This document shows positions 6,184 through 56,200 of a stretch of 64,000 nt of DNA, in pieces (position 1 is the first letter of the stretch; each line of letters opens with the position of its first letter). Made by a program: the position numbers and the translations under genes. A model generated the notes under the pieces. It saw only the letters and a program-made list of their open reading frames with translations. It was not told the origin of the DNA and searched no databases. The DNA lies in assembly GCA_950097015.1 (NCBI GenBank), contig CATNEN010000005.1, positions 806,001-870,000 of the forward strand. Reading direction: 5' to 3'. This stretch comes from Macrostomum hystrix (Eukaryota; Animalia; Platyhelminthes).

Positions 6184-6260
6184 GTTTCAGTGGAGTCAGG
6201 ATTCGCACCACCGACTTTCAGAAGTTGTGAGACCACGCTCTAACGACTTGCCATACCCCC
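6184..6260 (-). mobile_element. SINE family A head fragment
   Basis: The reverse complement resembles the tRNA-like head of 13230-13320. Confidence 0.5.
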
Positions 6261-10104: not shown

Positions 10105-12037
10105 TACACGAATGCAGCGCTTACCGGTTGGAACGCAGGATGACTTCGATTTCGGTGTATTTGCATGCAATAAATTAAGACTTCACAGGAAGAGACCGTC
10201 TTTACAAATCGAATCTTCGCCGGAGTTCGCTGGAGCGAGCCCGGTTGCCCCGGCACGGGCAGATATTGACAAACAAATAGGGCAGCAAGGGGGGCAGACA
10301 GGGGAGAATCAAGCCACCAGCGCGCAGGGAGGGGTAGGGTTGTACGCGCTGGCCGGGTGGACAGGCAAAGCCACGCAGAGCTGATTGGCGGGAGGGGCAA
10401 AGCCACGCAGGGCTGGAGTAAGGGTTGGTAGACAATTCCCGCGCCCAACCAATCAGATGGTGGCACAACGCACCCTGAGCAGGGCCGGGGGAGGAGGGTG
10501 AGGAAGGGTGGGGGGCCAGGGCCGAGCCAAACCGGCCTCAAACACAAGGGTCTTGGCGAGCAGTCGGCCTGTGGAGAAACACAGGCACTACACTAATAAA
10601 AAAGAAATATTGAAATGTCAGAGCTTTGTACATTTTTACGTTACTTCGAACTTAATGAGCTCACGAGGTAAGAAAATAATAAAATGCGTTTCATTTATTG
10701 ATAGGCTATAATTCCTGGATATCAAACCTCAGGAGACATATGTTTATACCATGTAGGCCTTGGCGTTTGCCTCTCATTATGCCACTCTTATATTGTCAAA
10801 GCTGAAATCTATTTCGAAGAGTTCTCTTCCTAAATTTCACATCGTTTGTCTAAAAAGGGAATTTTACTTTCTCCCCTAACACTGCATACCACGTTTTCAG
10901 TCACCTGCCGCAGATTTTCATCCCCAATTCGGACTATCTTTCTATGCGTGTGGCTAATTGGATTCATGACTTTTATGTTAGGAATGAGGCAAAAACACTT
11001 GGTAATGAGCTGCGGACAGAAACCTGCATCCAATTATAAATGCTAATATGCTTCCTTCAAACAAACGATAATGGCATAGGATTGTTGAAAAATAACGAGA
11101 AGTCGTCGTTGCTTAGAAAGGCTTCTTTACAGCAGCTGTGACAACAGAACAAGCTTCGTCAATGCAACTGGTTAAGCACACGCTTCAATAGCTGAAAATG
11201 TTGGCTACCGTTTCTTTGTAAACAAAAGCACCTTTGCCTAAATATTTCTTAAATTTTCTCTTTTCTTCTCATCGTTTCAGATCCTTTTGTTAGTTCTGTT
11301 TGTGTCAAAGACATTACTAAGCTTTAGTACCTTGCTGTCATGATTTAAACTCAAAATACCACATATTTATAGTTTTTTTGAACCTCTATAAATGCCCCAG
11401 GCGCGGAACAGTAGAGTAAAGCAAGAAGTTCACTTTTTTATTCAAGTTGATTTTTTATAGTCTCATTTTGCAGACAAGTCTGTCACTGACAACTTAAACA
11501 GGTCATGAACTTTAAAGACCTTGCACCCAAGGACGATAAACTTTACTTAGTGAGGCAAAGAAAATTAAATAGAAGGGTTGCAGAAACATTCACAAGGCAT
11601 ATTACGGATCAGGACAAAGATTAGACAAGTTAGTCTGCGTTGTTTTTGCATTAAGCGGTAAAATTTAACTCTTATTGTGTGCGGTCTTTATTCTAACCGT
11701 AAGGTAAGGTAAGGGCAATATTTACAAGTATCGTATATTAAATAAGTGGATTTATTAGGTGGAGAAAAAAATAGCTATATCCCGCATTTCTGTGCTCTAG
11801 ACTCCCCAGAACGGGGACTAAATTTCCAGCACGAGCTAATGTCCCAAAAATCTGACGCAGAAAAAGACAAAAGAAATATAAAAAGAGATCAATAAAAACG
11901 CGGTAAAGAAACAAAGTGTTTAAAACTGACATATAGCCTTCATCCGCTACATGATATTAAATGAACATTCACAACCTCTTACACTCTCACACATAAACTC
12001 CAAAAGCTTAACAGTTCTCAAAGTTCTTAACTGCTTC

Positions 12038-12970
12038 TCAAAGGTCTACCGCGCACAAACGGTACAGCGAGGACACATCGGAATCAGCGAGTGCCCTCTT
12101 GGAAATTGTAAAGCACTTCATGAAGCCCTGGAACACTCGGTTATGAGAGGCGGCGCGACTGGTGGCTCCGATCTGCACTGCGCTGCCCATTGTGGCGCAA
12201 GTGCTTCCAGAAGGGGCTGAACCGCTGACAGCCAGAGTTCCATTCACGTAGATCCTGCTGGCTGGAACCTGCCTGTCGAACACTGCCGTGATGTGAGTCC
12301 AACCACTTGCGGTGTCGGTGGATCCAGAACTAGTAAAGAAGATCGACGGGCAGAGAACTGCTAGCTGTATGATGCTAGGGGTTGGGCTGAGCCAAAATCT
12401 AGTGAAAATTTTTTTCGGCATTGTAATGCTCTCTAGAAGCGGCATATTTCCAAGAGTCGGATTAGTGACCTTCACCCACACAGAGAACGTGAAGCTCGTG
12501 AGACACTCTGAAGCCAGCTGGTCGATGTTGAATCGCTCATTCACACCGAACTGACCAGTGAAGTTGACCGCACTGTCCGTGTACTGCATGGCCATGTTCT
12601 CCTGCAGGTCGAGATGGCCGCTGTTCGAGGCCACATTGCGGCTGCGAGTGGCGTTGCTCATGGGCCAGAAGGCGACGAGGCTGAGCTGACGCAGGACGCT
12701 CCACACCTCGCAGTCGGTGTCGTTCGAGAGTCGCACAGTTTGCACGCTGTCCGACACGTTGCAGACGCCTGTGCGGTAGCTCCAGCCGATGCAGAGACGG
12801 AGCTGAGAGCACAGGAAGGCGCACGAGCGAGCGCTTGAGGCCGTCAGCAGATGATGGGGAGTCTGAGCGACCACGCAGCCACCGACTGACATTTCGTGCT
12901 TGGTCTGACCTGCACACGGTCCGAATATTAGTGAAATTAGTAGAGCAAGATAATGCCGATTGTTATTCAT
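12038..12970 (-). CDS. Secreted PAN/Apple-like + LamG-like protein, copy 3 (most divergent C-half)
   Basis: The ORF-track start at 12976 is GTG; the first ATG is at 12970 (MNNNRHYLALLISLIFGPCAG). Same domain motifs as copy 1. Confidence 0.88.
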   Translation of the reverse strand: MNNNRHYLALLISLIFGPCAGQTKHEMSVGGCVVAQTPHHLLTASSARSCAFLCSQLRLCIGWSYRTGVCNVSDSVQTVRLSNDTDCEVWSVLRQLSLVAFWPMSNATRSRNVASNSGHLDLQENMAMQYTDSAVNFTGQFGVNERFNIDQLASECLTSFTFSVWVKVTNPTLGNMPLLESITMPKKIFTRFWLSPTPSIIQLAVLCPSIFFTSSGSTDTASGWTHITAVFDRQVPASRIYVNGTLAVSGSAPSGSTCATMGSAVQIGATSRAASHNRVFQGFMKCFTISKRALADSDVSSLYRLCAVDL

Positions 12971-13229
12971 TTCCACTTTTTTAAATTGGAAAATGTCTTG
13001 TTAAAATATTTATGGTTTAGCTAAGATTGTCTTTGCCCTGGCTTGTCAAGAAAAAGTCCATGAAACTACAAATACATATTCTTGCTTTAATTAAAAAAGC
13101 GAACCAATCAGAAGTTTTTGTAAAACAAGAAATTGTGGAATGGTCATGGCATGATATTGTCAAGTTAGTTAAATATCGTAAAAATCTGTTTCTTTTGCAT
13201 ATTGTTATAATATTGTATTTTTAATAACA

Positions 13230-13521
13230 GAGGTTGCAGCCTAGTGGTTAGGGCGTCGGACTCACGACTTGAAGGTCGGGGGTTCGATTCCCGATTCCAC
13301 TGAAACAATTTGTGTCCTTTAGCAAGACACTTAACTCTGCATTGATTCAGTTCACCCAGCTGTTAAATGGGTACCAGCATCAGCTGGGATAATTGAAGGT
13401 GGGTGTGGCGTCCCCCCAGTCCATGGACTGAACAGCTGTACGCAGCCTTCAGATGCGCCGCGCATTAGCTGCGGCTGTGCTGTCGGCTGCACATCTGACC
13501 CAATTGGGGCAGGTGTAATCA

Positions 13522-13560
<39 letters not shown>

Positions 13561-13565
13561 TTTAA
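13230..13565 (+). mobile_element. tRNA-derived SINE family A, full length, CORE/V-like central domain, (ATT)n tail
   Basis: A-box-like GCAGCCTAGTGG, B-box GGTTCGATTCC, central TGTGTCCTTTAGCAAGACACTTAAC...CCCAGCTGTTAAATGGGTACC, and an ATT tail. Other copies at ~23465, 31405 and 58563. Confidence 0.85.
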
Positions 13566-14254
13566 TAAATATTTCCTTTGAAAACAAATTGCTGCTCAAA
13601 AGTAGCTCAGACAAAAAAGCCATGCACAACAAAACTACTGACAAAAATTTATTCAGTAGCAGCTTTTCGTGCTCTCGCGAGATCTCGAGTTTTTTTAAGT
13701 ACGACATTTGCTTCTACGGCCAGTGGTGGTTAATGAGTGGCCTATCTTGTGGATATAAAAGCTTATCACAGGAATTTCTGTGAGCTTGTGCTGGGACTGT
13801 GGGCTTGTCTATAAAGATTTGTAATTCTTCACTGTTCGGTCGGTCAACCGCTCCGGAGATACCACGCTACCTCAATGCACTGAACTCTGACTTTGTACAC
13901 AAGCTTTTTCGAGCAGCTTCTGAAAGCCTGTTCCAATTATCTGGAGTTGAGCGAGAGTGCAGAAGAATTTCGCTGTGAGATCTACGGAGAAGCAGACCAA
14001 GATCTACTCTGACCAGGTGCTTGTTTAGGTGCCATTCTTGCTGAGTTGACATTTGTCAACTGACCTGGAATGTTTGAGATGTGTGGCTGTCTCTGTTTGT
14101 TCTAAGAAATTTTGTCTCTCTCAAACAGCAGGAATATTTATCGCTTTATTCGTGTGGCTTCTTCTGCTGGTGCTTACGATAATTTTATCCCTGGCGGGGT
14201 AAAAGGTCATGGGACAATAGGAGCAGTGATTTTAGTAATCGTTTAATGTAATAT

Positions 14255-15346
14255 TATAGCATGGTTTCCGAGGTCTTTAATGTCATGGCCGAGGGCGCGG
14301 AAGCGCCTCGAGGCCATAGACATTAAAAACCGAGGAAACCGTGCTATAGGGTTATTGTAGTACGATAATAGTTTCCCCATCTATTTTAAAGATTTCTCTA
14401 AAAATGGATCAGTCCGAGGACGCGAAAGACCGTCTGACTGGGGAAACACCCATTAAAGACCGATGTCTATATTTCTTATGTCTATGGCCGAATATAGCGA
14501 GTTAAACTCTGGATCTTCTGGATCGAAATCACTTAACCTGATGGAAGGAGATAGATCCTACCCTAGCGGTCTGCTACATATTGAATACGGAGACATAGTT
14601 GGACTGACGAAGGACGAGATAGCCGCACGCATGGAAGCTGACAACGCTCTATTTGCTCTAGAAATGGACGCAGATAGAATAGAAGAGATCGCGGCTGCAT
14701 TCGCTGCGAGAATTGATGATAATACGCTTGCCGAACTGCTAGATGCAAAAGAGCCTCGAAACGAAGATATCGAGGCTATAATGCAAGATCTTGATTTGGT
14801 TGAGAAAAAAACTGAACCACCAAGTGCGAGTCAGCAAGAAAAATGGGCTCTAGAAAAATTTTATTCGACCATGGAATCCCTTCAACTTGAAGTCGACATT
14901 AAGACCTGCGCAGAGGAGCGATTGGCGGCCTGTATCCGAATTGCGTATGGAACTATCAAGCGCTCTGACGGTGGGTACTATGCACCTGCTACTTTGCGCT
15001 GTTTCCGGGCCGGTTTGTATCGCTGGCTGCTTCGGATGCGTGGAGTGGATATCATATCTAACCAGCTGTTCAAAAAAGCGAACAAAATGTTAAAAGTTGC
15101 TGCTAAACTGTTTCTGGAGAACGGCGGAGAAGTAAAGAGATTCAGCTCCATAGAAGACGATGATCTAGCTAAGCTTCGAAAGTATTTCGATCGGAGCACA
15201 CCAGCAAAGTTACAGCATGAGTTCTATTACAATATGATAAATCATTTATAGCTTAACGACCATAGACAATTTGAGTTTAACCAATTTTTTGGATTACCCT
15301 AGGGAAATCCCAGGGACGCGAAAGACCGCTTTTATCGTACTACAAT
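14255..15346 (+). mobile_element. Crypton-like (tyrosine-recombinase-family) element, internally truncated
   Basis: 94-bp palindrome at 14255-14348; 15-bp inverted repeats at 14354-14368 and 15332-15346; 15-bp direct repeats at 14418-14432 and 15314-15328. These enclose a DUF3504-like ORF. Confidence 0.55.
14463..15251 (+). CDS. DUF3504/KCTD1-ZMYM-like tyrosine-recombinase-derived ORF, truncated before the catalytic region (262 aa)
   Basis: Motifs KRSDGGYYAPATLRCFRAGLYRWL and IEDDDLAKLRKYFDRSTPAKLQHEFYYNM resemble the N-terminal part of Crypton/DUF3504 proteins (recognised from memory). The ORF stops before the expected xRG.E box. Confidence 0.55.
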   Translation: MSIFLMSMAEYSELNSGSSGSKSLNLMEGDRSYPSGLLHIEYGDIVGLTKDEIAARMEADNALFALEMDADRIEEIAAAFAARIDDNTLAELLDAKEPRNEDIEAIMQDLDLVEKKTEPPSASQQEKWALEKFYSTMESLQLEVDIKTCAEERLAACIRIAYGTIKRSDGGYYAPATLRCFRAGLYRWLLRMRGVDIISNQLFKKANKMLKVAAKLFLENGGEVKRFSSIEDDDLAKLRKYFDRSTPAKLQHEFYYNMINHL

Positions 15347-15979
15347 TAGATTTTTAGAGTTGGCTGCTCTTATTATAAGGAAAGTTATCGCTTTATTTTA
15401 GATTATAATTCGCGTATTTGTTACTTGAAATTAATATTTTCAATGGAAGATAAAAACTCTAGATATAATCTCCATTACCAAGTGCTGCCTAAATGCATAA
15501 GCTGGTGTGTATCAGTTTCTATCAGACGCCGTGAACATATAATGCATTTAAGGATGCAATACTTTTGATTGATGGAAAAATAGTTAATTATGATGATTCA
15601 ACGTAGAAAGGGATTTTTGTAAATTGGTAATGTCAGTAAGGCTAAAAAAATATTAGCCTATTAAACATAGAGTGAGCTCAAACTTATTCGAAACTTTGCC
15701 GCAGCAAGCCTAATATATTTTGGTGACGCAATCATTCTGCCGCCTTCACATACGACAGAAAGAAAATGCTTTTAGCTGCTTTTCCACAGTCTGAAACTGT
15801 ATTTTTAGAGTCATTCTGTAAGCCAATTAATTCTCGAGACACTTAACTCGAGTCCGGAGAGAAATCTCATTGCACAGCCTGCCAATTAACACGGAGACAA
15901 GGGTGAAGAGAATATTTGGAAGGAGAATGAAACTTTTTAAATCACAGAATCCAAAATAAAATTATGGGACACATAATAG

Positions 15980-16142
15980 AGTGACGCACAGGATTAGTAT
16001 GGGATAGACGCACAGAATTAGTATAGGGTAGACGCACAGAATTAGTATGGGGTAGACGCACAGAATTAGTATAGGGAAGAGTGACGCACAGAATTTGGAT
16101 GGGATAGAGTGACGCACAGAATTTGGATGGGATAGAGTGACA
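15980..16142. repeat. Short ~24-26 bp minisatellite with GACGCACAGA core
   Basis: About 6 tandem units; the core is shared with the 5979-6183 array. Confidence 0.75.
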
Positions 16143-16222
16143 GTCTAATCCTTGGATTAATTGGCACTTTTTGGTGAAAACACGATAAATATTGGTCTAG
16201 ACATTCAATCGCTAGAGCATTT

Positions 16223-16362
<140 letters not shown>

Positions 16363-17255
16363 TCTTAGACATTGTAGGTAGTAGGTAGTAGAATCTACAA
16401 ATAATCCATAACTCTTGAAAGCACTTTGACTGCAGATTACACTGTCACTAACCTTACCAGGATGATTAAAGCTAACCTTTATTTGGGGTCGGTGATATAG
16501 TAGAAGTATAAGTCCGCGCGCCGACTGTCAGCAACCGACATTCAACACATTCAAAAAAATTCTCACCAAGGGCTGTAAAGAGAAGATTTTAGAATAATAT
16601 CGATCGATATCAATTGTGACTGTCTTTAAAAATGTTTAACAGTTGAACAACCAGGGGGGTTTCCAACCCAGAAAATTTTTTTGCTGCGCCCGAACGGAGC
16701 AACGCAAGCAAACGAAACTCAAGAACACGAGCCAACTTTTTGTTGCGCATCTTCTGAAACAAGAACCAAGTCGCCAGTCCTTCAGACCGTCGAGATATTC
16801 AACGATTCTGACCGAAGGTATGATTTTTCCCATAAGCGCTAGTGCATTTCATACAGCCCTATAATACATGAATTAGCACTGCGCCTCAGTGCGACATTGC
16901 CAGGCCAAGGAAGTCAGAGATAATGCAGGCACATTCGGGTGACGTGCTCATAAAGTTTGAAGGTCTGGCATAAAAAATTGTCAGGGGGGGGTAATTTCCC
17001 CACCTCTTGCTAGAAAAAAACGGGCGGCGAAATGGCTTGGTAGTCCAACTGGTTAATCAGATTAGTCGTAAAAATCATCAAAACGTGTTTTTGCCCCTCT
17101 CAGGCTCAAGCCTTGCCACAGATTTTGTAGTTCAATAGTTGTATTTTGTTTGCTGCAAACAACAACGCGGGCAGAAAAATAAGAAAAACTATTGGGATTG
17201 ATTTTCATCACCGTAAAACAGCTGCCTTCTCAGCACAAGATTTGTAATTTGCTTC

Positions 17256-18167
17256 TCAGCAGATCTGAAACAAGAGAGCCACTTCAGCGCTGCTCAGAGC
17301 TCTCTGACACACTCCGAAGCATTTCATGCAGCCCTGGAACACTCGATTGTGCGTGGCAGAGCGAGTGATCGCTCCGATTTGCACCATGTTGCCAAAGTTC
17401 GCACAGGATGTCACGGCGACTGAAGAGCCACTGGTAGCCAGAGTTCCGTTCACGAAGATCCAGAAAGCCGGTGTGTTTCTGTTGTACACTGCAGCGATGT
17501 GAGTCCAACCGCTTGCCGTGTTAGTGGGTCCTGGCACTGTGAGCTGGGACAGAGGAGACTCAACTGAGAACTCAATATTAGTGCTAGCAGGAAACAGCCA
17601 GAGTCGAGTAAAATATCCAGCTGGCATCGTCAGGCCTTCAAACAGAGGCATGGCGCCTCGAGATTGGTTCGACACCTTCACCCACACAGAGAACGTGAAG
17701 CTCGTGAGACACTCTGAAGCCAGCTGGTCGATGTTGAATCGCTCATTCACACCGAACTGACCAGTGAAGTTGACCGCACTGTCCGTGTACTGCATGGCCA
17801 TGTTCTCCTGCAGGTCGAGATGGCCGCTGTTCGAGGCCACATTGCGGCTGCGAGTGGCGTTGCTCATGGGCCAGAAGGCGACGAGGCTGAGCTGACGCAG
17901 GACGCTCCACACCTCGCAGTCGGTGTCGTTCGAGAGTCGCACAGTTTGCACGCTGTCCGACACGTTGCAGACGCCTGTGCGGTAGCTCCAGCCGATGCAG
18001 AGACGGAGCTGAGAGCACAGGAAGGCGCACGAGCGAGCGCTTGAGGCCGTCAGCAGGTGTTGGGGAGTCTGAGCGACCACGCAGCCTCCGAGCGACATTT
18101 CGTGCTTGGTCTGACCTGCGCACGGGCCAAAGAATAAAAGCGGTAGTAGAGCAATATAGTGAATCAT
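17256..18167 (-). CDS. Secreted PAN/Apple-like + LamG-like protein, copy 4
   Basis: The ORF-track start at 18194 is GTG; the ATG is at 18167 (MIHYIALLPLLFFGPCAG) in AAAATG context. The C-half is almost identical to copy 2. Confidence 0.88.
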   Translation of the reverse strand: MIHYIALLPLLFFGPCAGQTKHEMSLGGCVVAQTPQHLLTASSARSCAFLCSQLRLCIGWSYRTGVCNVSDSVQTVRLSNDTDCEVWSVLRQLSLVAFWPMSNATRSRNVASNSGHLDLQENMAMQYTDSAVNFTGQFGVNERFNIDQLASECLTSFTFSVWVKVSNQSRGAMPLFEGLTMPAGYFTRLWLFPASTNIEFSVESPLSQLTVPGPTNTASGWTHIAAVYNRNTPAFWIFVNGTLATSGSSVAVTSCANFGNMVQIGAITRSATHNRVFQGCMKCFGVCQRALSSAEVALLFQIC

Positions 18168-18949
18168 TTTAACTGTTTTTTCAATACGAGTCACTCAAAT
18201 CGCTATTGTTTGAGAGACGGGTTCTGTGTCGCTGGTATTCTCTCCGACGTTTTTTATTGAACTTTTTATGTCAATGGTATCGTCTGAACTTTATTTGTCT
18301 GTAAACACAACCAATCAGGAGCTTTGCTTGAATTTTGAGGTGATTATCATACCCCTCATGAGTAGGACGCATTCAATTAAGTATTTGTTTCATGCAAGTA
18401 CTATCGGGCATTGGCTTTGACAAGTTCGAGATCACATCCAATTAACGTGTTTTTTAAACGTGCTTAGAACCGTTCCTCAGCGGCACAATGAGGTAAGGTA
18501 AGACAGCTCCATTAGCTAAAATTTTTATCAATATTTTTTCATCAATTGAGTTTGCGTTCCATCAGTCGATGGCTTAGCAGCACTGTTTGGCGTTGGCTAC
18601 GATTGGGCAGTAAAGCTTTCAACAGCTCTTTATCGCTGGGGTCATTTTTTAATGGTATTAAAATATTTTTCAGAAATGCTTTTTTTAGAAATGCGATCCT
18701 GCCCTTGGCAGGGCAAAGTCAGCTCAGCTTAGCTTAAAATGGCATTTGTGACGATATAAGCCATTGCAGATTCAATAACCTTACTATGAGCAGAAATGAT
18801 GGTTTTTTAAAGAGTCAAAGCTAGCAAAAATAAATTTTTATAAAAGTAAATGTAATTAGAATTATTTGTATACATTAGATAAGACAGGATGAATTCCCTG
18901 TGAGTGACTGGCAATGCGATGTGAACTTTTTTGGTTTCTTAAACGGCTT

Positions 18950-19800
18950 GGCGGAAATAACGAGGCAGGTCACAAAAACTCACTGCAGTCAGCCAGACCG
19001 AATATCAATAATTCGCGCAGGTCGAGCAGTCTTTCCGGCGGTACCAAAAGAAGGCCAGGGGCCGTCTCGATCCTCACACCGAGGCAGTGGCGTAGCCAGG
19101 ATTTTTTTCTTGGGGGGGGCACCTCTGGGGGGCGCCACTACAAGGAGGCACCACTACCAGGGGGCGCCAAATAAGTTTTTCATCCGATTAGGGAGGCCAC
19201 GGCCCCACTTTGCCGCCCACCCTGGCTACGCCCCTGCATCGAGGAACACGTCTATGTCTTGCGTCGGAGGAATGGACTTCTCGTGGCTAACCTCGAAGCC
19301 TAAACACTTCAGGAGGGAGTCCAACAGTTTCTCGTAGGCCTAGGAGCACTCATCGTGCGTAGCAGCAGTGACCACAAAGTCATCCAGGTAGTTGAAAATA
19401 GCAGAGAAGTCGTCCTTATACAGCCATGAAGCCACGAATGGCTTGCGAGATGCGATGAAAACTCGAGACAGACCCAGCCACACCCATCGGAAGTCGCCGA
19501 TATTTCATGTAGGTGACTTAATCATCACCGGTGAACTTGAATTTGAGACCGAGCAGGGGCCAGCAGTCCTGGCGACAGGCAACCGACCGGTAGGAAGCGG
19601 AGCTTGCGGTCTGCAGTGAAGAAATCATTCACAGAGCCGTTAGCTGTGACTGAGCAGTCATGAATGAGTCAGATGCCTCCGGAGGACTTACAGATGGCTC
19701 CGAAAGGGCTGACCAAGTAAGGAGGGTCAGACATCACGGCGAGCAGACCCTTGCGAATCTCATCCCGCAGCTGACTGTCGACTTCCGCTCTGCATTTCTC
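18950..19800 (-). pseudogene. Degenerate DIRS/Ngaro-type reverse transcriptase fragment
   Basis: Minus-strand translation across stops and frameshifts gives YRSVACRQDCWPLLGLKF, YRRLPMG, NYLDDF (19379-19390) and LGFEVSHEKSIPPTQDIDVFL|GVRIET. Confidence 0.7.
19085..19236. mobile_element. hAT-type MITE (152 bp)
   Basis: TIRs CAGTGGCGTAGCCAGG / CCTGGCTACGCCCCTG; 8-bp TSD CACCGAGG / CATCGAGG (7/8 match). It interrupts the DIRS RT at the FLG motif. Confidence 0.8.
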
Positions 19801-20216
19801 TAGGGATGAGTACTAGTTCTCGGATTCATTTGTGAATTCTTCGTTATGTCGGCGCACTGTGGCACTCCAACTGACACTCGAAATTTCAGTTTTTTTACCA
19901 AGGATCTTGAAAGAAACTTATTCAGGAACTATTGAAACTATTAAAAGTTAAAGTAAAAATATAACAAATGAGAATGAGAATTAAATTTTACTTTTTTGTC
20001 GTTTTAATTATCATCAAACATTGCTAATTGGGCATGTGTAAAATTCAGCCGGCTTGTTTTTGACATTGTGTTACTCAAGGCTTACAACACAAAAAACAAT
20101 TCTATAGATATATTTTATTTGCTGAAAACAAATTAGCGAGGAAAAAGGCAAAAACTCGTCAACTCACACCACTAAGAATTGAGTATGGTGCTCATCACAG
20201 TAAAACAGCTGCCTTC

Positions 20217-21134
20217 TCAGCACAACTCAAACAAGAGGGCCACTTCAGTGCTGCTCAGAGCTCTCTGAGACACTCCGAAGCATTTCATGTAGCCCTGAAA
20301 CACTCGATTGTGCGTGGCAGAGCGAGTGGTCGCTCCGATCTGAACGAAATTACCAAGCTTTGCGCATGATGTCAGGGCAGCTGCTGAGTTCGTGGCCGCA
20401 ATCGTTCCATTCACATAGATCCTGCATGCTGGAGTGTGTCCGTCATACACTGCTGAGACATGGCTCCAACTGGTGGCATTGGGGATGAATCTGCGTTGAT
20501 TGAGCACGGATTCCGGTGCTGTGACTGTCATATCAATATCAGTGCTAGCAGGATACAGCCAGAGCCGAGTGTATCCTTGTGAATTGACCAGGCTTTCGAA
20601 AAGAGGCATGGCGCCTCGAGATTGGTTCGACACCTTCACCCACACAGAGAACGTGAAGCTCGTGAGACACTCTGAAGCCAGCTGGTCGATGTTGAATCGC
20701 TCATTCACATCGAACTGACCAGTGAAGTTGACCGCACTGTCCGTGTACTGCATGGCCATGTTCTCCTGCAGGTCGAGATGGCCGCTGTTCGAGGCCACAT
20801 TGCGGCTGCGAGTGGCGTTGCTCATGGGCCAGAAGGCGACGAGGCTGAGCTGACGCAGGACGCTCCACATCTCGCAGTCGGTGTCGTTCGAGAGTCGCAC
20901 AGTTTGCACGCTGTCCGACACGTTGCAGACGCCTGTGCGGTAGCTCCAGCCGATGCAGAGACGGAGCTGAGAGCAGAGGAAGGCGCACGAGCGAGCGCTT
21001 GAGGCCGTCAGCAGGTGTTGGGGAGTCTGAGCGACCACACAGCCACCGACTGACAGGTCGTGCTTCATCTGACCTGCACACTGGCTGAAGATTTGTGACA
21101 TTAGTACCGCAACGAAGTGCAGCTTGTAACTCAT
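20217..21134 (-). CDS. Secreted PAN/Apple-like + LamG-like protein, copy 5
   Basis: The ORF-track start at 21140 is GTG; the ATG is at 21134 (MSYKLHFVAVLMSQIFSQCAG). Intact ORF with a divergent C-half. Confidence 0.88.
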   Translation of the reverse strand: MSYKLHFVAVLMSQIFSQCAGQMKHDLSVGGCVVAQTPQHLLTASSARSCAFLCSQLRLCIGWSYRTGVCNVSDSVQTVRLSNDTDCEMWSVLRQLSLVAFWPMSNATRSRNVASNSGHLDLQENMAMQYTDSAVNFTGQFDVNERFNIDQLASECLTSFTFSVWVKVSNQSRGAMPLFESLVNSQGYTRLWLYPASTDIDMTVTAPESVLNQRRFIPNATSWSHVSAVYDGHTPACRIYVNGTIAATNSAAALTSCAKLGNFVQIGATTRSATHNRVFQGYMKCFGVSQRALSSTEVALLFELC

Positions 21135-21749
21135 TTCCACCGTTTTTCTTGTGAATAACTTTTCGTTAAGCTTTGAGTAGCTTTGCTGACGCTTATCAAG
21201 AACAAGTTAGAAAAACTTCAAACACAACTATTTCTTTGCTTAAATCCAAAAAGCTAACCAATTAGCTTGATGGAATAGTTTGTGGAATGCTTGAATGCTT
21301 GTAGAATGTTGTTGCTATTTAAGTTGCCTCTCGTGAAACTTTTTGTCTAGGAAATTTTTAAGCCCTAATTAAGGGAAATATTTTCTTCGATGTCTCCAGC
21401 ACAATGCAATATTACTTTTTCACACATCTTAAATGGTTTGAGCTCACAAGCAGTCTGGTCTGGGGAATCTACTGTTGGCACTGAATGACTTAACTGACTT
21501 TAGGGCCTCCATAAACGCAAGAAATATAAAGCGTTAGTCAGACGCTGGCACATTCTAAAATGCTTTAACAGGCTCAAAGTTTCTCTCGTTATTGTCGCGA
21601 TGATTAGAGAAGACCACTTTAAGTAACACTGCCTGCTTGCTTAGGGCCTCAAGAAACCCCTTTGTCTCCAGGGCACTATTACAAATAAAGCCGGCAAAAG
21701 AGATGGCCGGTCTCAAAATGGTGTAGATCCAACAGAGACGGGTGGGTAA

Positions 21750-24654: not shown

Positions 24655-25185
24655 ATGGAGCAGCAGCACAGATGGACGTCGATTCGCAATCCGCCATTCC
24701 GGCTGCAGCTGATTCTGCCAGCATCCGAGTCTACCGCCGCGAGCCAGTCAGATCACTGGCTTCCAGCCCCATCAACTGTTTCACCGCCGCCGCAGCATCA
24801 TCGACAACCGTACGCGCAGCTGCTACAGCTACGTCATCACCGGCTGAGGACCTACCAAATTGACGACGAAGAGCGCGACAACGACAGAACTTCGTCGTCT
24901 GAAAGTTCACTGGGCCCAAATGGACAGCGACCAGGTAGCTCAGATTCTGGCATCTCCGATTGCGGCGCCGCAAATCAGAATACGCCGAGCCAGACGGAGT
25001 CCGATGCTTCAACGGCGCCCGCCTGTCGCATCTGCTTGACCAGCCTATCCAGCGTTGGTCCATCAGCCGCTGCCAACTGCGGCCACGTCGCCTGCCTACC
25101 CTGCCTGATGACCTGGTATCGAACCAGATCTGTCTGTTTCTGCTGCCGGAGTGTCACGACAGGCTTCACATTGCTCTATCTCTGA
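24655..25185 (+). CDS. Single-exon C3HC4 RING finger protein (176 aa), putative E3 ligase
   Basis: C-terminal CRIC-x14-CGH-x2-CLPC-x3-W-x6-CFCC with a Ser/acidic low-complexity linker. The N-terminal frame is less certain. Confidence 0.7.
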   Translation: MEQQHRWTSIRNPPFRLQLILPASESTAASQSDHWLPAPSTVSPPPQHHRQPYAQLLQLRHHRLRTYQIDDEERDNDRTSSSESSLGPNGQRPGSSDSGISDCGAANQNTPSQTESDASTAPACRICLTSLSSVGPSAAANCGHVACLPCLMTWYRTRSVCFCCRSVTTGFTLLYL

Positions 25186-38200: not shown

Positions 38201-41200
38201 AGTGTACACTGCGGGCCGCGAACTCTAAGCTGCTTACACTACTTTCCCCCTAGAAGCAGTTCCGTCAAGCAAAGCCAGCCATGTAAAAGTCAGGAGGCCG
38301 GCGTTCTCTCGCCGAGCGTCGGAGAGCCTCGGCCGGCTCGGGCGGGGCCGCCGGCGGATCATCGGGCTGCACGTTTTGGTCCGGTTCCGGCCAGCCGACC
38401 ACCGCATCGCCACCCGGGTCAGCCGCTGGACTGGGCGGTCGCACGGCGAGGCCGTTGGCGTTCGTGTCGGCATCGGCGGCAGCAGGCAGCTCCAGCGACG
38501 GCCGCCGCTGAATGAAGAGTCGGAGCCGGTCGTGGTGCACCACCAGCTTGCGCCGGCGGCCTGCCTGGTCCTGGATGCGGTAGTTCACCTCGCCGAGGCG
38601 CCGCAGGATCCGATACGGCCCCTTCCATTTGTCGCTGAGGCACCGCGTCTGGCCGCGCTTGACGACGGAGTTGCGCAGCATTACCAGCTGGCCCTCTTCA
38701 AACGGCACGAATCTGGCACCCTGGTTGACTCGCTGGTTGCGCGCCGCCTGGGCGTCCCGCAGCCGGCCGTGCACCGCGTCAAAGGCGCCCTGCAGGTTCG
38801 CTTGCGTCTGCTGCAGAAAGTCGTGCGGGCTGCCGCTCGCCGCCTTGTCGCCGTCCACCAGCCAGCTGTCGAGCGCCAGCCGCGGCGGCCAGCCATGCAG
38901 GACCTGGTACGGGCTGAGGCCGGTGGTGCTGTGCACAGAGGTGTTATAGGCCCAGGTAACGTAGTGCAGCTTCCGGTCCCAGTCCTGCTGGCTCTCCGAC
39001 ACGACCGTCGCCAGCATGTCGCCCAGTGTCCGGTTGCCGCGCTCCACGACGCCGTTGCCGCTTGGGTGGAATGGCGATGTGCGAGTTTTCTCGATGCCCA
39101 GCTGCTCGCAGAGCCGGACGAAGACGTCGCTCTCAAACTGCCGTCCTTGGTCGCTGTGCAGCACTTGTGGGGCACCGTGCCGCAGCACAACGGCTCTGAG
39201 CAGCGCATCCGCCACCGTCACGGCGTCGATCGTCGCCAGCGCCGATGTCTCCATCCACTTGGAGAAGGTGTCGCACATGCTGAGGATGTAGGCGTTGCCG
39301 TCTGTCGTGCGCGGCAGCGGGCCTTTAATATCGATCTGCACCTGCTGCCAAGGCGCTGTCGGCTGGCCTGTCGTCTGCAGCGGTGCCCGCTGCGGTCTGG
39401 TCGGACTCTTCTTGGTTAGGCAGGCGGCGCAGCTCGCCACCCAGTTCTCCACGTCCCGCCGCAGGCCCGGCCACCAGCAGCGCTCCGCCAGCCTCGCCAC
39501 CGTCCTGTCAACACCGAGGTGGGCGCTCTGGTCGCTGGAATGCGCCTCCTGCAGGAAGTGCGGCCGCAGGTGGCTGGGAATGACCGGCTTGCCGTGGAAC
39601 AGCAGGACGCCCGCCGTACTTATTGATGCCCCGTCCAGCAGCTCGCGAACCTGCGCCGCCCAGGTGTCAGACAGATTGTCGATTCCTGTCGCTAGCGCAT
39701 GGAACGCCTTGCTCAGTAGCGTGTCCTGCCGCTGCTCCTCATGCAGGCGCGCGGCCTCCCAGCGGGGCTGCAGGCGCGTGCCGGCCACCCGGCTCAGTGC
39801 GTCCGGCACAACGTTCTCCCGGCCTGGCCGGTACAGCAGCGAGAAGGAGAACTGCTGCAGCGTAGACAGCCACCGCGCCAGCCTGCCTTCCGGGTCCTTG
39901 GTCGCCAGCAGTCCCTGAAGCGGCCGATGGTCGGAGTAGACGGTGAAGCTGGGAACACTGAGCAAGTACGTTCTGAAGTGCTTCAAGCTCCACACCAGCG
40001 CCAGCAGCTCCCGGTCTGTCGCCGAGTAATTTCGCTCCGCCTTGTTGAGCGTGCGCGATGCGAAAGCCACAGGCAGCTCAGCGTCCCCGTGCAACTGGCT
40101 GAGCACGGCGCCCACTGCGAACTGGCTGCTGTCGCAGCTCAAAACGAACTGCTTGCTGAAGTCGGGCAGCCGCAGCACCGGGGCAGTCGTCAACTTGTCC
40201 TTCAGCTCGTTGAACGCCCGCTCGCAACTGCTGCTCCATCTAAAGTCTCTCGCTGTCTGGCTGACGTCGTGCAGCACCCTCGCAGTCTGGCTGAAGTCCT
40301 GGATGAAGCGGCGATAGAAGCCTAGCATGCCGAGGAACCGCTTCACCTCCTCTGCTGTCGTCGGGCTGGGCATGCTGCGGATGGCGTCCACCTTGCTCGG
40401 GTCTGGCGCGATGCCCTGCTCGCTGACCCGGTGCCCCAGGTACAGCACCTGGCGGTGGCCGAAGACACTCTTTGCCCTGTGCAGCTTGAGCCCGGCCCCT
40501 CTAAGCCGCTGAAGGACCTGTGCTAGCCGCGCCAGATGCTCGTTGAAGGTTCTGCTGAAGACGATGATGTCGTCGATGTAGGTCAGCACCACCTCCCAGG
40601 ATAAGCCGGACATGACGAGCTCCATAAGGCGCTGAAATGTCGCTGGGGCGTTGCACATCCCGAAGCCCATCTTGCGGAACTGCATCAGAAGGCAGTCTTT
40701 GGCCGGTCTTCCTCTGCCACCTCCACCTGGTGATAACCCTGCCGGCAATCGATGGTGGAGAACCAGGAACAGCCGACCAGTGCGTCCATGGCTTGCTGCA
40801 GATGCGGCAGCGGGTAGGCGTCCTTGACTGTGCAGGCGTTCAGCTGTCGCCAGTCGGTGCAGAGCCTGATGTCGCCGTTCTTCTTGCGCACAACCAGGAG
40901 GTTGCTGGCCCAAGGAGACATGGACGGCTCGATGATGCCGCTGTCCAGCATCTGGCCGATCTTCTTGTCTACCTGGTCCCGCACGGACAGAGGCAGACGT
41001 CGCTGAACCTGCCTGTGCGGCCGCGTTCCGGGCTCCAGATCTATCCTGTGCTGCAGCAGCTCCGTGTTGCCCAGGTCGTACTCGTGCCTTGCGAAAAGGT
41101 CCTCGTTTTGCTCCAGCAGCTGGCGCAGCTTCTCCGCATCCGCCTCGGACAGCTCCGGGTTGATGTTCCAGCCGAGGGGGTCCTCCTGGAAATAGTCGCT

Positions 41201-44200
41201 CCTCCCCCCGGCCATCGCACCCTCGAACGTCCCGACGGCTTTATTGGCGTACAGAAGCACGGGCTCCTCGGCCAGGTTGCACATCTTGACGGGGATTCGG
41301 CCGTCGTCCGAGATAGTCAGCACGCGCGCCGAAAGCACCGCCGTGGCTGCTACGAAGTCCTCGCAGGGCTTGAACACCCCCTGCTCTCGGCTGGAGTCCA
41401 CCCGGAGCCATACGACCTTCTCGCTCCGCGCCGGCAGCTCCGTGTTGACCGCCACGCGCGCCACCAGAACGCTTGGCACCAGGCGGCAACTGGCCCGCGG
41501 CTGCTCGCTGCTGAAAGCCACCGTATCGCTGTCGAACCGGACGACGCCTTCCTTCATGTCGATGGTCACCGTCTGCGACACCCGGCCGATGAAGTCCATG
41601 CCGAGAATCAGTCTAGGCTGGATGCCGTCCACCACGGTAAAACTGTGCCGCGCTCGAATCGCGCTGCCGATCGCAACCTCCGCCGTCGTCAGGCCAAGGC
41701 AGCGCAGCCGCGAGCCGTCGACAGAGGTCGGCATGACGCTGATGTCGCTGCAGTCGAGCCGGCAGTCAAGCTTGTCGTACAGCGACTTGTCCATCAGCGA
41801 AATCTGCGCGCCCGTGTCCAGCAGGGCGGGCGAGCTGTGCCTGCCGAAACGCACTGGCACAAAGATGGACGACGCTGATCTGTGGGCCCCTTGAGAGGGG
41901 GTCGGCGCTGGCCCCAGGCTGCCGACCCTCAGCAGTTTCCCTGCGGCTGTGCAGCTGGTGTCGGGCAGACCGCCGCCGTGTGCCCCTTGCCTGAGCACCT
42001 GCTGCAGCGGGCTCCTGCCGCTCTCGGGCACTGCCTCGCGATGTGGCCAACTTCCCCGCAGCTGAAGCACTTGATGGCCCTTTGACGGCTTTCCTTGCCT
42101 GCGGCTCCCGTTCGCACACCTGCAGCCAGCTGCTGAACCTGCTGCTCCAGACGGCTGATCCGACTGTCCTCCGCCGTCACGGCTGCTGACGTCGCTGATG
42201 ACTGGCGACTCACCAACTCAATGCGGGCCGCTCGGTCAATCAGGACTGTCAACGGACAGGAGTCCGCGTCCTGGTCTTTGAGCAGCGTATCTCTTACAGC
42301 TGCTGGGAGGAGGCGCATCAAGCGGAACTTCACGTCCTTCTCCCTGGCGTCCACAGAGTCGTCTGGCCGAGCCCGGAGGTGCAGCAGCTTGAGGTTGTAC
42401 GCCAGCTCTCTCAAAGACTCATTTGGCCGACGTTTGCGTTCCTCAAACTCCTCCATCGCCCGGTAGCTGCTCAGGCTGTCGCCGAAGTGCCCGATGAGCT
42501 CCACCTTAAGCTGCTCGTAGCTCACTTTCTTTTCGTCTGGAAGTTCCCACACAAAGATCTGTGCCTCTCCAGACAGCAGCAGCTTCAACTTCTTCGCCTT
42601 CTTCTTATCGTCCCAGTCGCTGTCATCGGCGAAGTCTTCAAACATGCTTAGCCACATTCTGACATTTGAGTCACTGCCGGCGCCGCTGAACTTTTGCGGC
42701 AGTAAAGATTCTTGCTTAGTCATGCTGAGACCGCTGCCACCAGTGTAAGACGCTGGTTTGTCAGGTAGCATGCACACAAAACGCGAAGAGCCATACCGGC
42801 TCGCTGGCACTATTATATTTGGCCAGAAACACTGGGTGGGCGTACCCACCCCCCAATCACGCCACGCAAGCACGCACGCAGGCGTGTACGCTCTACCCCC
42901 CGCAGTGTACACTGCGGGCCGCGAACTCTAAGCTGCTTACAGCATGAATTATCGAGGGGTTAGCATGACTTATCGAGTGGTTAGCATGACTTATCGAGTG
43001 GTTAGCATGAATTATCGAGGGGTTAGCATGACTTATCGAGTGGTTAGCATGAATTATCGAGGGGTTAGCATGACTTATCGAGTGGTTAGCATGACTTATC
43101 GAGTGGTTAGCATGACTTATCGAGGTTAGCATGAATTATCGAGGGGTTAGCATGACTTATCGAGTGGTTAGCATGAATTATCGAGTGGTTAGCATGACTT
43201 ATCGAGGGGAAGCATGACTTATCGAGGGGAAGCATGACTTATCGAGGGGAAGCATGACTTATCGAGTGGTTAGCATGAATTATCGAGTGGTTAGCATGAA
43301 TTATCGAGTGGTTAGCATGAATTATCGAGTGGTTAGCATGAATTATCGAGTGGTTAGCATGACTTATCGAGGGGAAGCATGACTTATCGAGGGGAAGCAT
43401 GACTTATCGAGGGGAAGCATGAATTATCGAGGGGAAGCATGACTTATCGAGGGGAAGCATGAATTATCGAGTGGTTAGCATGAATTATCGAGTGGTTAGC
43501 ATGAATTATCGAGTGGTTAGCATGACTTATCGAGGGGAAGCATGACTTATCGAGTGGTTAGCATGAATTATCGAGTGGTTAGCATGAATTATCGAGTGGT
43601 TAGCATGAATTATCGAGTGGTTAGCATGAATTATCGAGTGGTTAGCATGAATTATCGAGTGGTTAGCATGAATTATCGAGTGGTTAGCATGAATTATCGA
43701 GTGGTTAGCATGACTTATCGAGGGGAAGCATGACTTATCGAGGGGAAGCATGAATTATCGAGGGGAAGCATGACTTATCAAGGGGAAGCATGACTTATCG
43801 AGTGGTTAGCATGAATTATCGAGTGGTTAGCATGAATTATCGAGGGGTTAGCATGAATTTTCGAGTGGTTAGCATGAATTATCGAGGGGAAGCATGAATT
43901 ATCTGGGAGTGCCAAGCTTCGTCAAGGGATATATCAAAGGGGTAGTATGATTTATCGGGGAGATATCAAGAAAAGATAAGCGTAGTATTTAAGCTGCATA
44001 TGTTTAATTTTTCCTTTTTAGGGCTGTGAAGCGTGATTTTTCCGCCAAATAAGTGGGTTTTGGTTGCTAGTCCTATGAACTAAATGTAAAACGTCAGTTT
44101 GTTTTACAACCTTAGGGTACATGCTTGCAAATTTTAGGATTGCATTTAAAATGCAATCCGGTTACGCTTTAACTCGTAGGCATGATGAGCTATATTGTGA

Positions 44201-50200: not shown

Positions 50201-53200
50201 AATTAAAATTATTATTAGCATGTCTGCTAGATTCTCTAGTCAGGATGTCAAGACGTCTCTCTTATGTGTTGGAACTAATTGGAATATTTTCTTGAGTTTT
50301 GAACATATTTTTAGTGTACTGCAGCTGTAATCACAAGATTCGATTCGAAGCCAGGGAATAATTCGCATTTTCGTTCGAACAGATGGCTAGACAAGAACGA
50401 GGATGATGGACAGATTGAACGGGATCTGACTTGGCTGGGATCAATGCTAGACAGTGAGTTCTTCTATTCTATTCTATTGGGATTTCGTTTTTTTGGGATC
50501 ATGTCTAAACAAGCTTCAACCCGCAACACTACCAGAGCTGTCCTACAATGTCTCCGTGAAGACCGGCGACGTCCAAGGTGCAGGTACAGACGCCAACGTG
50601 TTCCTCAGCATCTTCGGCAAGAAAGGCGAGACTGGTGAGCGTCAGCTGCGCGCCTCGGACTCGGCTCTGAACAAATTCGAGAGGAACCGAATCGACATGT
50701 TCAAGATTGAGAGTCCCGACATTGGAGAGGTTTGTAGGGCCTAGCAGAGCGCTGGTTTCAACCTCACCTATAACTATGTTATTATATAAGGGGGGTCGGT
50801 GGCAGAGCGGTTATCGCGTTTGCCTCTCGCACCACGGTCCCTAAGTTCGATTCCACGGCGAGGCCACATTTATTTGGGGCGCAGCCGCGGAGAGAAGGCT
50901 CGGGGGCTTGTCGTGCAATTTACACCCTTGAGGGCCAACCTCCAAGGCACAGTGAGAGTGTACACTGCCTGACGATGAGAAAGTCAGGGCAGATGTACAC
51001 ACCTGTGTGAGCGTATGCCTGCGTTCGGTATCTGTGTGCGTGTGTGCTCAGGAGTCAGCGAAATGAGCAGAATTGCCTCCTCGCTGGCTGCGGGTCTAGT
51101 GTCACCAAATGATGTGCCATTGCCCGCAGCCCGCCTGTAATTATTATTATTATTATTATTATGTTATTATACTCGCATTCAGTCCAGGGACAGCCCACCC
51201 ATCTAAATAATTCTAGCACAGCTCTGGCTGGTTCCCATTTTACAGCTGAGTGAAATAAAGCCACGAGAAATTTAATATATTTCTCAGGACCGCAAATCGT
51301 TTACTTCGGGGTGAGATTCGAACAAATGACCTCTTGGTCAATATTACGACGCTTTAAACACTGAGCTACAAGCTATCCTGTCTTTATCTCTATATAGAAA
51401 ATTTATAGAGAAAATTTAAATCAATTGTATCACTATCAATATGCATTTACCTAACGTGCTGTTTTGAGGGAAAAAGCTAAAGGTATTCAATACTCAAACT
51501 GATATTATTGTGTCTGATGTCTGATGTGTGAAGATGTCTTGATAACATGAGAGAACATGTCTTGATAACCTCTCGTCTGGACATTGTACTTCCGCATATC
51601 GCAGTATTAGCAGACGAAACAATTATCCGATTCATTGTTTTAAGCGTGGAACCTTGACTTATTCAAAGTGAAAGAATGAAAGCAACGCTATGCGGGTATT
51701 GCCAAACATTTAATCGCCTTAAAGCCACGAGAAACAGGTAACTGATCATTATTCTGAGACATTCTTCGACAAGCTATTATAGTTTTTGCTGGCATCAAAA
51801 TATCCAATGCGGTCCATATTTTGATAGCCGCTTGCCCTCTCTCAAATTTGGCGCACTTTAGTGTCAAGAAAAAGCGTTCAGTCTCTCCCAGTGTTATCCC
51901 AAAGCCTGGACCGATGCATTCGTCCCTTCGAGCGTCCTTCAATCGTCCGACTCATTGAAATACGCGCTGTCGTCATCGAGTAGGAGGTCCGATGGTTCCG
52001 TTTCATCGATCAGATTGTTGTCAGGATCGCGCTTGCCGAAGTGCAGTAGTCCAGCACGCTTGCCGAAGTGCAGTAGTCCAGCACGCTTGCCGAAGTGCAG
52101 TAGTCCAGCACGCTTGCCGAAGTGCAGTAGTCCAGCACGCTTGCCAAAGTGCAGTAGTCCAGCCCGCTTACCGAAGTGCAGTAGTCCAGCACGCTTCTTG
52201 CCAAAGTGCAGTAGTCCAGCACGCTTGCCAAAGTGCAGTAGTCCAGCACGCTTGCCAAAGTGCAGTAGTCCAGCACGCTTCTTGCCGAAGTGCAGTAGTC
52301 CAGCACGCTTCTTGCCGAAGTGCAGAAGTCCAGCACGCTTCTTGCCGAAGTGCAGTAGTCCAGCACGCTTCTTGCCGAAGTGCAGTAGTCCAGCACGCTT
52401 CTTGCCGAAGTGCAGTAGTCCAGCACGCTTGCCAAAGTGCAGTAGTCCAGCACGCTTACCGAAGTGCAGTAGTCCAGCACGCTTCTTGCCGAAGTGCAGT
52501 AGTCCAGCACGCTTGCCAAAGTGCAGTAGTCCAGCACGCTTCTCAAATCCCTCGCCATCGGCATCGTCTCCGTCAATGACGACATCAGCTTCGGCGTTGC
52601 TCATCGGAATCACCTCGTTGGCCTGTTGGGCTTGAAGCCAGGACTCAACAGTCGGGCTGTCGGTGACTACCTGGCTCTCTGCCAAGCAGCAGGCACAGAT
52701 GACGGCCAGAAATGTTGCTATCGACATTCGCCACATGGTTGCCAATGCTATTGCAAAATAATCTGAAAAAAGACAAAAATTGTGCATAGGTACGGAACAA
52801 AAAATGTGCTTCTTACATAATAGGGCTAATCAGTTTGACGCGTACCTATAGACAAACGACTTCTCGATAAGCAGTGAGTTTTCGGAATAAAAATTAGGTT
52901 TAGGAACTCCAGGGGGAGCTTGATTCGCGGCTGACAGTGAGAAGAAATTTTGCCAGTTAAAGGCGCCGCCACTTTTATATTTGCAGCTTTGAGTTCTATA
53001 AGGCAGCTGCTGATTGGTTGCTTGTCCATAAACTGACCCGCTCAGTCTGCGATGTCATCGATTGGATCTAGCCTAGCCTAGCCCTGGAGGAGACCCAGGA
53101 GCAAATATGTGAAATTATTTTAGTTAAAGGCTTTAGTTAGGCGAAAATGGATTCAACACACGTTTTCACTCTCTTTGACTTACTCCGCAACCTAGTCGTT

Positions 53201-56200
53201 TTTTTCACATTTTATTGATGGACTAATGAAAAAATATTGAGCATAGTTGTGCAGTAAGCCCACGAGGAACTGCTTAAACAGTCATTTTCTTCAGTACATT
53301 TGCTCTTAAATAGGACCGTAAACTGTGTTTAATTTAAAAGTGCTCATAACAGAAATAGATTAAACACCATCTTTTATTTAATCACAGTTAGCTTTTGCAA
53401 TATCTGGACCGATTATTATATTACGAGTACTTTATATGTGAAAAAAATTACGTAGGAGTTTATGATTTCACATCAACTTGAGAATAAAACTGTAGGACAT
53501 TGTTTAGTTCCCGTTCAAAAATCCAAAAAGAGTCTTGGTTCTCTACGATGACCGTAACTAAATGAAAGCAATCATTTTTCTGAGATCATAAAGATCTGGC
53601 CTCCTGGGACTCAAATTAAATTAAAATTCTTAAAAAGTAAGTCATGCGCTTAAAAAATCAAATCAACCGCCATTTATTATCGAGTGCTAAAATGGCAAAC
53701 CCTTTCTCGCGGGCAATCACGTGACAACTGTCCTTGTGTGAGTGCTAAAAATAGCAATCACGTGACAACTGTCCTTGTGTGAGTGCTAAAAATAGCAATC
53801 ACGTGACAACTGTCCTTGTGTCAGTGCTAGAAATGGTAAACCATTTCTCGCGGGCAGTCACGTGACAACTGTCCTTGTGTGAGTGCTAAAAATAGCAATC
53901 ACGTGACAACTGTCCTTGTGTCAGTGCTAGAAATGGTAAACCATTTCTCGTGGGCAATCACGTGACAACTGTCCTTGTGTCAGTGCTAAAAATAGCAATC
54001 ACGTGACAACTGTCCCTGTGTCAGTGCTAGAAATGGCAAACCCTTTCTCGCGGGCAATTACGTGACAACTGTCCCTGTGTCAGTGCTAGAAATGGTAAAC
54101 CATTTCTCGCGGGCAATCACGTGACAACTGTCCTTGTGTCAGTGCTAGAAATGGTAAACCATTTCTCGCGGGCAATCACGTGACAACTGTCCTTGTGTCA
54201 GTGCTAGAAATGGTAAACCATTTCTCGCGGGCAATCACGTGACAACTGTCCTTGTGTCAGTGCTAGAAATGGTAAACCATTTCTCGCGGGCAATCACGTG
54301 ACAACTGTCCTTGTGTCAGTGCTAGAAATGGTAAACCATTTCTCGTGGGCAGTCACGTGACAACTGTCCTTGTGTCAGTGCTAGAAATGGTAAACCATTT
54401 CTCGCGGGCAATCACGTGACAACTGTCCTTGTGTCAGTGCTAGAAATGGTAAACCATTTCTCGCGGGCAGTCACGTGACAACTGTCCTTGTGTGAGTGCT
54501 AAAAATAGCAATCACGTGACAACTGTCATCGTGTGAGTGCTTGAAATATATCTTGAGATATAGGAATCACATGCCAAAAATAAATCTTGCAAACATACAC
54601 GTACAGAAATAAATGCAATCTGTTTTCTCACAGCTCGAGCGTATCAGAATTCGTCACGATGGCAAACTAGCCAACTCCGGCTGGTTCCTGGACTGGGTAC
54701 GCATAGCGGTACCCTCCCAGGGCAAGCAGTACTTGTTCGCGGCGCACCGCTGGCTGGATACTAATGAGGCCGACAGAAAGCTCGAGATTGACATCGATTG
54801 TAGCGAAGTCATGGATATAGAAAGAAGTGAGTTGATCGAAACGTAACTGCGATGTTAATTTAAATAAACTTTACTTATTTCCACGAAAGGGTCATTGTCA
54901 AAAAAGGTTAAAAAATTAAGAGTTTCGAATGAAGTTAAGAAAGGACAAAATCGATTCAAATCTCACTTTCTTTCGCAGCCATTCCGTACGAGATCATCGT
55001 TCGCACTGGCGACTGCAAAGGTGCCGGAACTGATGCGGCTGTATTCGTTCAAATCTACGGCGAGGACGGCCTAAAAACCGACCAGACATTGCTTCGCTCT
55101 CGATCGGACAACTTCGAACAGGGCAAGGAGGACCGGTTCAAGTTGGACCTAATCGACGTCGGACCAATACAGAAGATACGCATTGGGCATGATGGTACTG
55201 GAATTGGCGACGGCTGGTTCCTCGATAATGTCCTTATCAGGCGGCACGCACTGCGAGGTTCTCGCCGCTTGAAGCTTAATCGGCAGTCCAGCTCGCAGTC
55301 TCGCAACCGGTCCGTGTCTTTGGCGCAGCCACCACTGGCCAACCGAAGAAAGTCCACTGTGGCGGCTTCCGGCGCTGGCGTCTTTAGACAGGAAGTCCAC
55401 GACGATGATGATGACGAAGATGAAGACGGCGTAGTGGATCTCGATTCTGATGATGTCGGCGGTCGGGGACAGCGTCGATCTCTACGACCGGCGTCGGCCA
55501 AGAAGCGACAGCCTCAGCGCCGAAGTTCGTCTCCCGCTGGCGCAGCTGGCGGTGCCAGGTCGCGCTCCCGATCACCATACGATGAAGATGATGACCTTCA
55601 TCTAGCAATTAGTGATGAAAATGATGACTACGAGATGACTGTCCGTGACCGGCGCAGACGGTCCTCAGCCAGATCGCAAAGTCCGAAGAGTCCCAGGCCT
55701 CGACGTCGGGTTAGTCGCGGCAGAATGGGCTTCGAAGGTGAAGATGACGATGACGATATCGATTTAGAAGAAAGAGATGATCTAGCCTCATCGAGAAGCG
55801 ATCGCCTACGTCGGCCATCCTCTTCTGTTGGCAATCGTCGACGATCATCTGCGAAGCAGGCACCTTTGGGAACTAGCGGATATCGAAAGAGTTTTAATGA
55901 TAATGATCTAGACGATGACGATGATGACGACTTGCCATCGTCGTCACGCGCCAGCCAACGTCCGTCTTCTTCACTCGGCCGACGATACTCGGCTCGACCA
56001 TCACGTGCCACTGTCGCATCTTCAGATGATAACGACCTAGACATAGACGACGATGATGGTAAGGCTAGTCGTCGTTCGTCGACCAGGACTGGCAGCGACA
56101 TGCGCAGACGCCGCGCTAACTCAATGATGCCCCTGGGTGACCGTCAGCGCAGTCTTTGGCGAGTCGATGAGGAATCCGAAGGTGGCCGCTCCTTTGATGA

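Follow-up and report, generated by a model that had tools for sequence, protein, structure and literature searches.

A multi-copy AGLLHF-amide precursor gene in Macrostomum hystrix that resembles the polyclad XHFamide precursor

Genomic setting of the peptide gene

We analyzed a window of 64,000 nucleotides from the flatworm Macrostomum hystrix (contig CATNEN010000005.1; all positions are those of the window) and identified a neuropeptide-like gene on its minus strand. The gene is antisense to a host gene and lies inside one of its plus-strand introns (50730..54633). The exons flanking this intron encode positions 1-61 and 64-109 of the PLAT model when each is scanned separately, and further PLAT exons are found on both sides of the peptide gene. 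Because of these many PLAT repeats, and from exons that were searched singly rather than joined, we infer that the host is a PLAT-repeat, LOXHD1-like gene.

Several other elements are present in the window. Of the 17 TCACGTGA palindromes (E-box) in the window, 15 fall within a minisatellite of 41/59-bp units (53713-54548) that begins 0.8 kb and ends 1.6 kb upstream of the peptide gene; this minisatellite could be either a cluster of bHLH sites or neutral. A Ty3/gypsy-type LTR retrotransposon (38265-42912, minus strand), whose three ORFs encode a zinc knuckle, protease, RT, RNase H and integrase, has 21-bp minisatellites on its flanks and apparently lies within the PLAT-repeat gene. Positions 2944-21140 on the minus strand hold five single-exon genes for secreted PAN-LamG proteins whose N-terminal halves are nearly identical, and for the one protein of this group that was searched the sole database match is a Macrostomum lignano protein with 67% identity. 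The plus strand carries a single-exon RING-finger ORF (24655-25185) and a 262-amino acid ORF without a Pfam match (14463-15251), which may resemble DUF3504/Crypton-like transposon proteins.

Transcript and flanking signals

Fifteen public runs from five studies contain the stretch or part of it, and contigs from four of these (X2, X5, X9 and X10) were placed on positions 52480-53690, beside most of the repeat array. In all four runs the contigs join 52762 to 52846, thereby skipping an 83-nt GT..AG intron in the 5' UTR (52763..52845, minus strand), and they span 52512-52762 with no joint. The contig starts and the splice joint together delimit a non-coding first exon (5' UTR) at 52846..52921, also on the minus strand. 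Cover is zero both inside the intron and upstream of 52922 in X5, X9 and X10, which come from two studies; X2 contains both spliced and unspliced forms. Although the kinds of run are guesses, a joined form without any cover of the intron, as in three of them, points to mRNA. The peptide gene is transcribed and spliced, yielding a two-exon transcript, and the 5' UTR intron proposed in an earlier sequence-only reading of the window is confirmed along with transcription itself.

Contigs in three runs, whose depths differ about 40-fold, start at 52921/52922, an initiator-like C-A site not preceded by leader letters, a coincidence that on the strength of contigs alone cannot establish a start site. 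The 5' UTR is 102 nt long and contains no ATG. A longer ORF beginning at an upstream in-frame ATG (52787) was rejected, since this ATG sits inside the spliced intron. The sequence TATAAAA (52973..52979, minus strand) had been put forward as a candidate TATA box; it is found 58 nt upstream of the shared contig start, and this assignment is doubtful because -58 is a non-canonical spacing if the contig start is the true start. Downstream of the coding region, ATTAAA at 51709..51714 (minus strand) is a candidate polyadenylation signal on the basis of sequence.

Two further observations concern the public runs. One X2 contig ends at 53615 in 21 loose A residues on the plus strand, at an A-rich site, and probably reflects host-gene pre-mRNA, antisense to the region upstream of the peptide gene, on which oligo-dT had primed. 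For runs X13-X15, filed under two further organism labels, the shared fraction of the words is 4-5%, and they perhaps come from relatives carrying the repeat unit.

The precursor and its repeat array

The coding sequence of the prepropeptide (51939..52736, minus strand) is a single-exon ORF of 798 nt that encodes 265 amino acids plus a stop codon. It consists of a predicted 19-amino acid signal peptide (52680..52736), an acidic pro-region of 46 amino acids with 12 Asp/Glu and no Lys/Arg (52542..52679), a leading KR followed by 18 AGLLHF-G units with KR or KKR linkers (52029..52541, a 27/30-bp repeat), and an acidic C-terminal tail of 29 amino acids plus stop with 12 Asp/Glu (51939..52028). The signal peptide, which was predicted from hydropathy and the -3/-1 pattern, has a basic n-region, a hydrophobic core, Cys at -3 and Ala at -1. 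KR precedes the first copy, and each of the 18 AGLLHFG units is closed by Gly and a dibasic site, this being KR in eleven instances and KKR in seven. The sequence-only reading had described the same signal-peptide-like start, acidic spacer, unit and linker counts, and acidic tail.

The units differ at the codon level by TTC/TTT, GGC/GGT, CTA/CTT and CGT/CGG/CGC, all of which are synonymous, and the sole indel is one AAG (Lys codon), which is also present in all four runs examined. This tally agrees with the earlier claim that substitutions are synonymous and indels whole Lys codons. The probability that five distinct variants would all be synonymous, with transitions and transversions weighted apart, is approximately 0.003; the test counted sites and not copies because homogenization renders the copies dependent on one another. 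Moreover, none of 14 other tandem arrays tested within the window contains the Gly plus dibasic motif in any frame. A neutral minisatellite, which we considered as a candidate, is ruled out by the synonymous-only variants, the splicing and the 14 control arrays. At the level of the peptide the reading frame of the repeat is preserved, and the selection on the peptide that had been proposed from the sequence is upheld.

We consider it very probable that the ORF at 52736-51939 encodes a neuropeptide precursor. Like other multi-copy amidated precursors it carries an N-terminal signal peptide (by hydropathy) and Gly-ending repeats between dibasic sites, and its transcript is spliced.

Proposed processing and action

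Signal peptides route prohormones to secretory granules, and prohormone convertase cuts them after KR; carboxypeptidase E strips the basic residues, and PHM/PAL converts Gly to an amide. The AGLLHF precursor would be sent into secretory granules by its signal peptide and cleaved by prohormone convertase after each KR. Trimming of Lys and Arg by carboxypeptidase E would then give one product from both KR and KKR linkers, and amidation by PHM/PAL would release 18 AGLLHF-NH2 peptides per precursor (MH+ 656.39). The 18 copies amplify one signal and add no diversity. The amidated peptide may be released by a limited number of neurons, signal through a class A GPCR belonging to the RFamide-receptor group, and modulate muscle, cilia or reproduction.

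The same processing could instead serve secretion from non-neuronal gland cells, for example into seminal fluid or mucus or as a pheromone, and a copy number this high would be in keeping with bulk release. However, known neural precursors have the same layout, and the polyclad XHFamide precursor discussed below is expressed in a neuronal cluster (PMC10396302), which makes secretion by gland cells scarcely probable.

Searches for related precursors

Exact look-ups of the 265-amino acid precursor in protein collections returned no record. The best Pfam match is Orexin, which is non-significant (E 0.062), and there is no FARP match. Word-based searches, which cover only sequences of 0.55-1.75 times the query length, found two weak RFamide-type precursors with the full-length protein, namely an FMRFamide-like one from a mite, in which LHF-amide copies occur, and an LFRF/LFRY-type one from Owenia, and nothing with the 104-amino acid N-terminal piece. 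An HMMER search of 1.84 billion representatives of all lengths gave 337 matches, which are driven by the repeat and whose E-values it inflates. Among these are chelicerate HF-amide precursors, myomodulins, PGVLRF-amide precursors and molluscan LFRFamides, and the best 150 of the 337 contain no GLxHFG unit. One match (P0130) mixes PSLVRF and PSLVHF copies, and thus exchange of Arg and His occurs within one precursor. None of the 18 matches from a pattern scan of metagenomes lies in a peptide precursor. The ESM Atlas feature neighbours listed are all peptide precursors, which has low recognition value and serves as a lead. Neither an M. lignano orthologue nor an intermediate was found in the protein database searches.

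The sequence-only reading had proposed an undescribed peptide. AGLLHF-amide itself is absent from the papers and databases searched, a scope outside of which lies the flatworm catalogue of McVeigh et al. 2009, which reportedly includes M. lignano peptides. However, the polyclad flatworm Prostheceraeus crozieri has a listed precursor of similar build, XHFamide, so the kind of precursor is already known.

Relationship to XHFamide

XHFamide is a multi-copy xLHF-amide precursor (Piovani et al., 10.1101/2023.01.04.522730 Table S3; PMC10396302) that consists of a signal peptide, one IRF-amide, 16 HF-amide and two HY-amide nonapeptides, G-KR sites and a short acidic tail (10.1101/2023.01.04.522730). 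It is expressed in a GnRH-positive neuron cluster in P. crozieri (PMC10396302) and is listed with flatworm peptides in a 2026 review (PMC13551398). Compared with LLHF, the last four residues of the XHFamide peptides score 18-20 of 22, those of LFRFamides 10-14, YIRF 7 and IPRF 5; a mite peptide scores 19. As in XHFamide, multiple aliphatic-aliphatic-His-Phe-amide copies are present in the AGLLHF precursor. The acidic N-terminal extension and the leading IRF-amide copy are missing, features known from one species and perhaps not defining.

We lean towards a reading in which the AGLLHF precursor is the Macrostomum counterpart of polyclad XHFamide, an offshoot of FMRFamide/YIRFamide-type RFamides in which Arg was replaced by His and which would act on a class A GPCR. 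The synonymous-only variants, the precursor layout and the spliced contigs from two studies are in favor of this reading, as are the four-residue scores and the separate precursor genes that P. crozieri has for sNPF (with a terminal PFRF) and a YIRF-type FMRFamide (10.1101/2023.01.04.522730 Table S3). Against it, the likeness to XHFamide comprises four residues, and LHF-amide endings are also found in mites, spiders and acoels, in which they most likely arose by convergence. The substitution of His for Arg is feasible in functional terms, as Drosophila FMHF-amide activates the FMRFamide receptor (review PMC12035899). The AGLLHF peptide is not itself of the FMRFamide/YIRFamide type, since it ends in LLHF rather than in aromatic-x-Arg-Phe-amide and its precursor has no FARP Pfam match. 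The earlier remark that His stands where FMRFamide-like peptides have Arg was apt. Its view that no described family is near must be revised in light of the multi-copy XHFamide of a polyclad and of LHF-amide in mite FMRFamide-like peptides and acoel LxFamides.

It is also conceivable, if rather unlikely, that this is a Macrostomum-specific multi-copy neuropeptide that undergoes the same processing and acts on a receptor of its own, with an LHF-amide ending reached by convergence and no orthology to XHFamide. None of the databases searched holds an orthologue, and short motifs often converge (PMC6188537). In contrast, the match to a second early-branching flatworm is specific, as the peptides of both end in aliphatic-aliphatic-His-Phe-amide. 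Furthermore, no HF-amide precursor was found in planarian supplements, and no multi-copy LHF-amide precursor among the entries listed in the portions available of nemertean, brachiopod and phoronid supplements, a distribution that fits a flatworm family lost in planarians.

A third proposal is that a duplicated sNPF/LFRFamide gene underwent the Arg-to-His change and encodes a ligand of an sNPF-type receptor with roles in feeding or metabolism. The best whole-layout HMMER matches among short precursors are molluscan LFRFamides (GSLLRF, GGLLRY and AGTLLRF; P0047, E 3e-11), which have contiguous hexapeptide-GKR units, but these E-values are among those inflated by the repeat. The AGLLHF precursor lacks the terminal PFRF/FHWG peptide that 26 of 30 LFRFamide-type matches carry, a His copy occurs in none of the 30, and His rather than the Arg of an Arg-Phe/Tyr-amide ending is found in 18 of 18 AGLLHF copies. 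An intron after the exon encoding the signal peptide is a consistent feature of sNPF genes, whereas the continuous ORF and the contigs reveal none at this location. We regard descent from sNPF as improbable.

Finally, AGLLHF-amide, polyclad XHFamide and acoel ASALHF-amide might be remnants of one ancient LxF-amide system that also includes the echinoderm L-type SALMFamides, in which case AGLLHF-amide would be a candidate ligand of a spiralian kisspeptin-type receptor. The LxF-amide ending is shared, ASALHF-amide is of equal length with four of six residues identical, SALMFamides are associated with kisspeptin-type receptors, and clade-2 receptors of this type are present in molluscs and annelids. 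The resemblance to L-type SALMFamides suggested by the sequence-only reading therefore stands for the LxF-amide ending but not for the wider SxLxF motif, in which Gly occupies the Ser position (G-L-L-H-F). The IRF-amide copy of XHFamide points to RFamides, and the lack of a multi-copy LHF-amide precursor among the nemertean, brachiopod and phoronid entries mentioned above likewise speaks against such an old family. Both the shared ancestry and the kisspeptin-type receptor have a slim chance of being correct.

Significance

The gene is real and absent from the protein collections searched, and its peptide is one for which no record was found; the precursor is of a known build and near a listed but unstudied flatworm peptide. 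If orthology is true, the orphan polyclad XHFamide reaches into the Macrostomorpha and represents an early flatworm family of which the planarian catalogue yielded no member. RNAi is routine in Macrostomum, and one uniform hexapeptide makes for simple receptor deorphanization. AGLLHF-amide also lets the acceptance of His for Arg at RFamide receptors be tested outside arthropods, as opposed to co-evolution of the receptor. Such a gene is easily overlooked, being minisatellite-like, within the intron of another gene and missing from the protein databases searched.

Comparison with known precursors

The XHFamide precursor shares with the AGLLHF precursor its occurrence in a flatworm, a signal peptide, many (M/I)-(L/I)-H-F copies followed by G-K-R, and a short acidic tail; that both have 18 copies is probably coincidence. 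XHFamide differs in its acidic YYGDD-type N-terminus, nonapeptides, dipeptide spacers, sequence variants and single IRF-amide copy, whereas in the AGLLHF precursor an acidic pro-region is followed by 18 identical hexapeptides in direct succession.

The molluscan LFRFamide/sNPF precursors (Biomphalaria KAI8767534.1 and oyster sNPF) have the signal peptide, the acidic spacer and contiguous hexapeptide-GKR units in common with the AGLLHF precursor, and their peptides follow the same small-small-Leu-aliphatic-x-Phe-amide pattern. However, they have Arg in place of His, four to seven copies, a terminal PFRF or FHWG peptide, and an intron that follows the exon for the signal peptide. Chelicerate FMRFamide-like peptides (YLHF-, ILHF- and MLHF-amide) share the xLHF-amide ending through an Arg-to-His change, but they are products of the arthropod FMRFamide gene itself and are long, variable peptides with spacers. 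This change is best read as parallel to that in Macrostomum. Acoel LxFamides and echinoderm L-type SALMFamides share LxF-amide and differ by the Ser of SxLxF, by having four to five copies in acoels, and by belonging to distant phyla. The ASFVRL-amide precursor of M. lignano (PAA62963.1) comes from the same genus and has contiguous identical hexapeptides whose linkers vary by whole Lys residues. Its peptide sequence is unrelated to AGLLHF, yet its linkers indicate that such indels are a habit of the genus.
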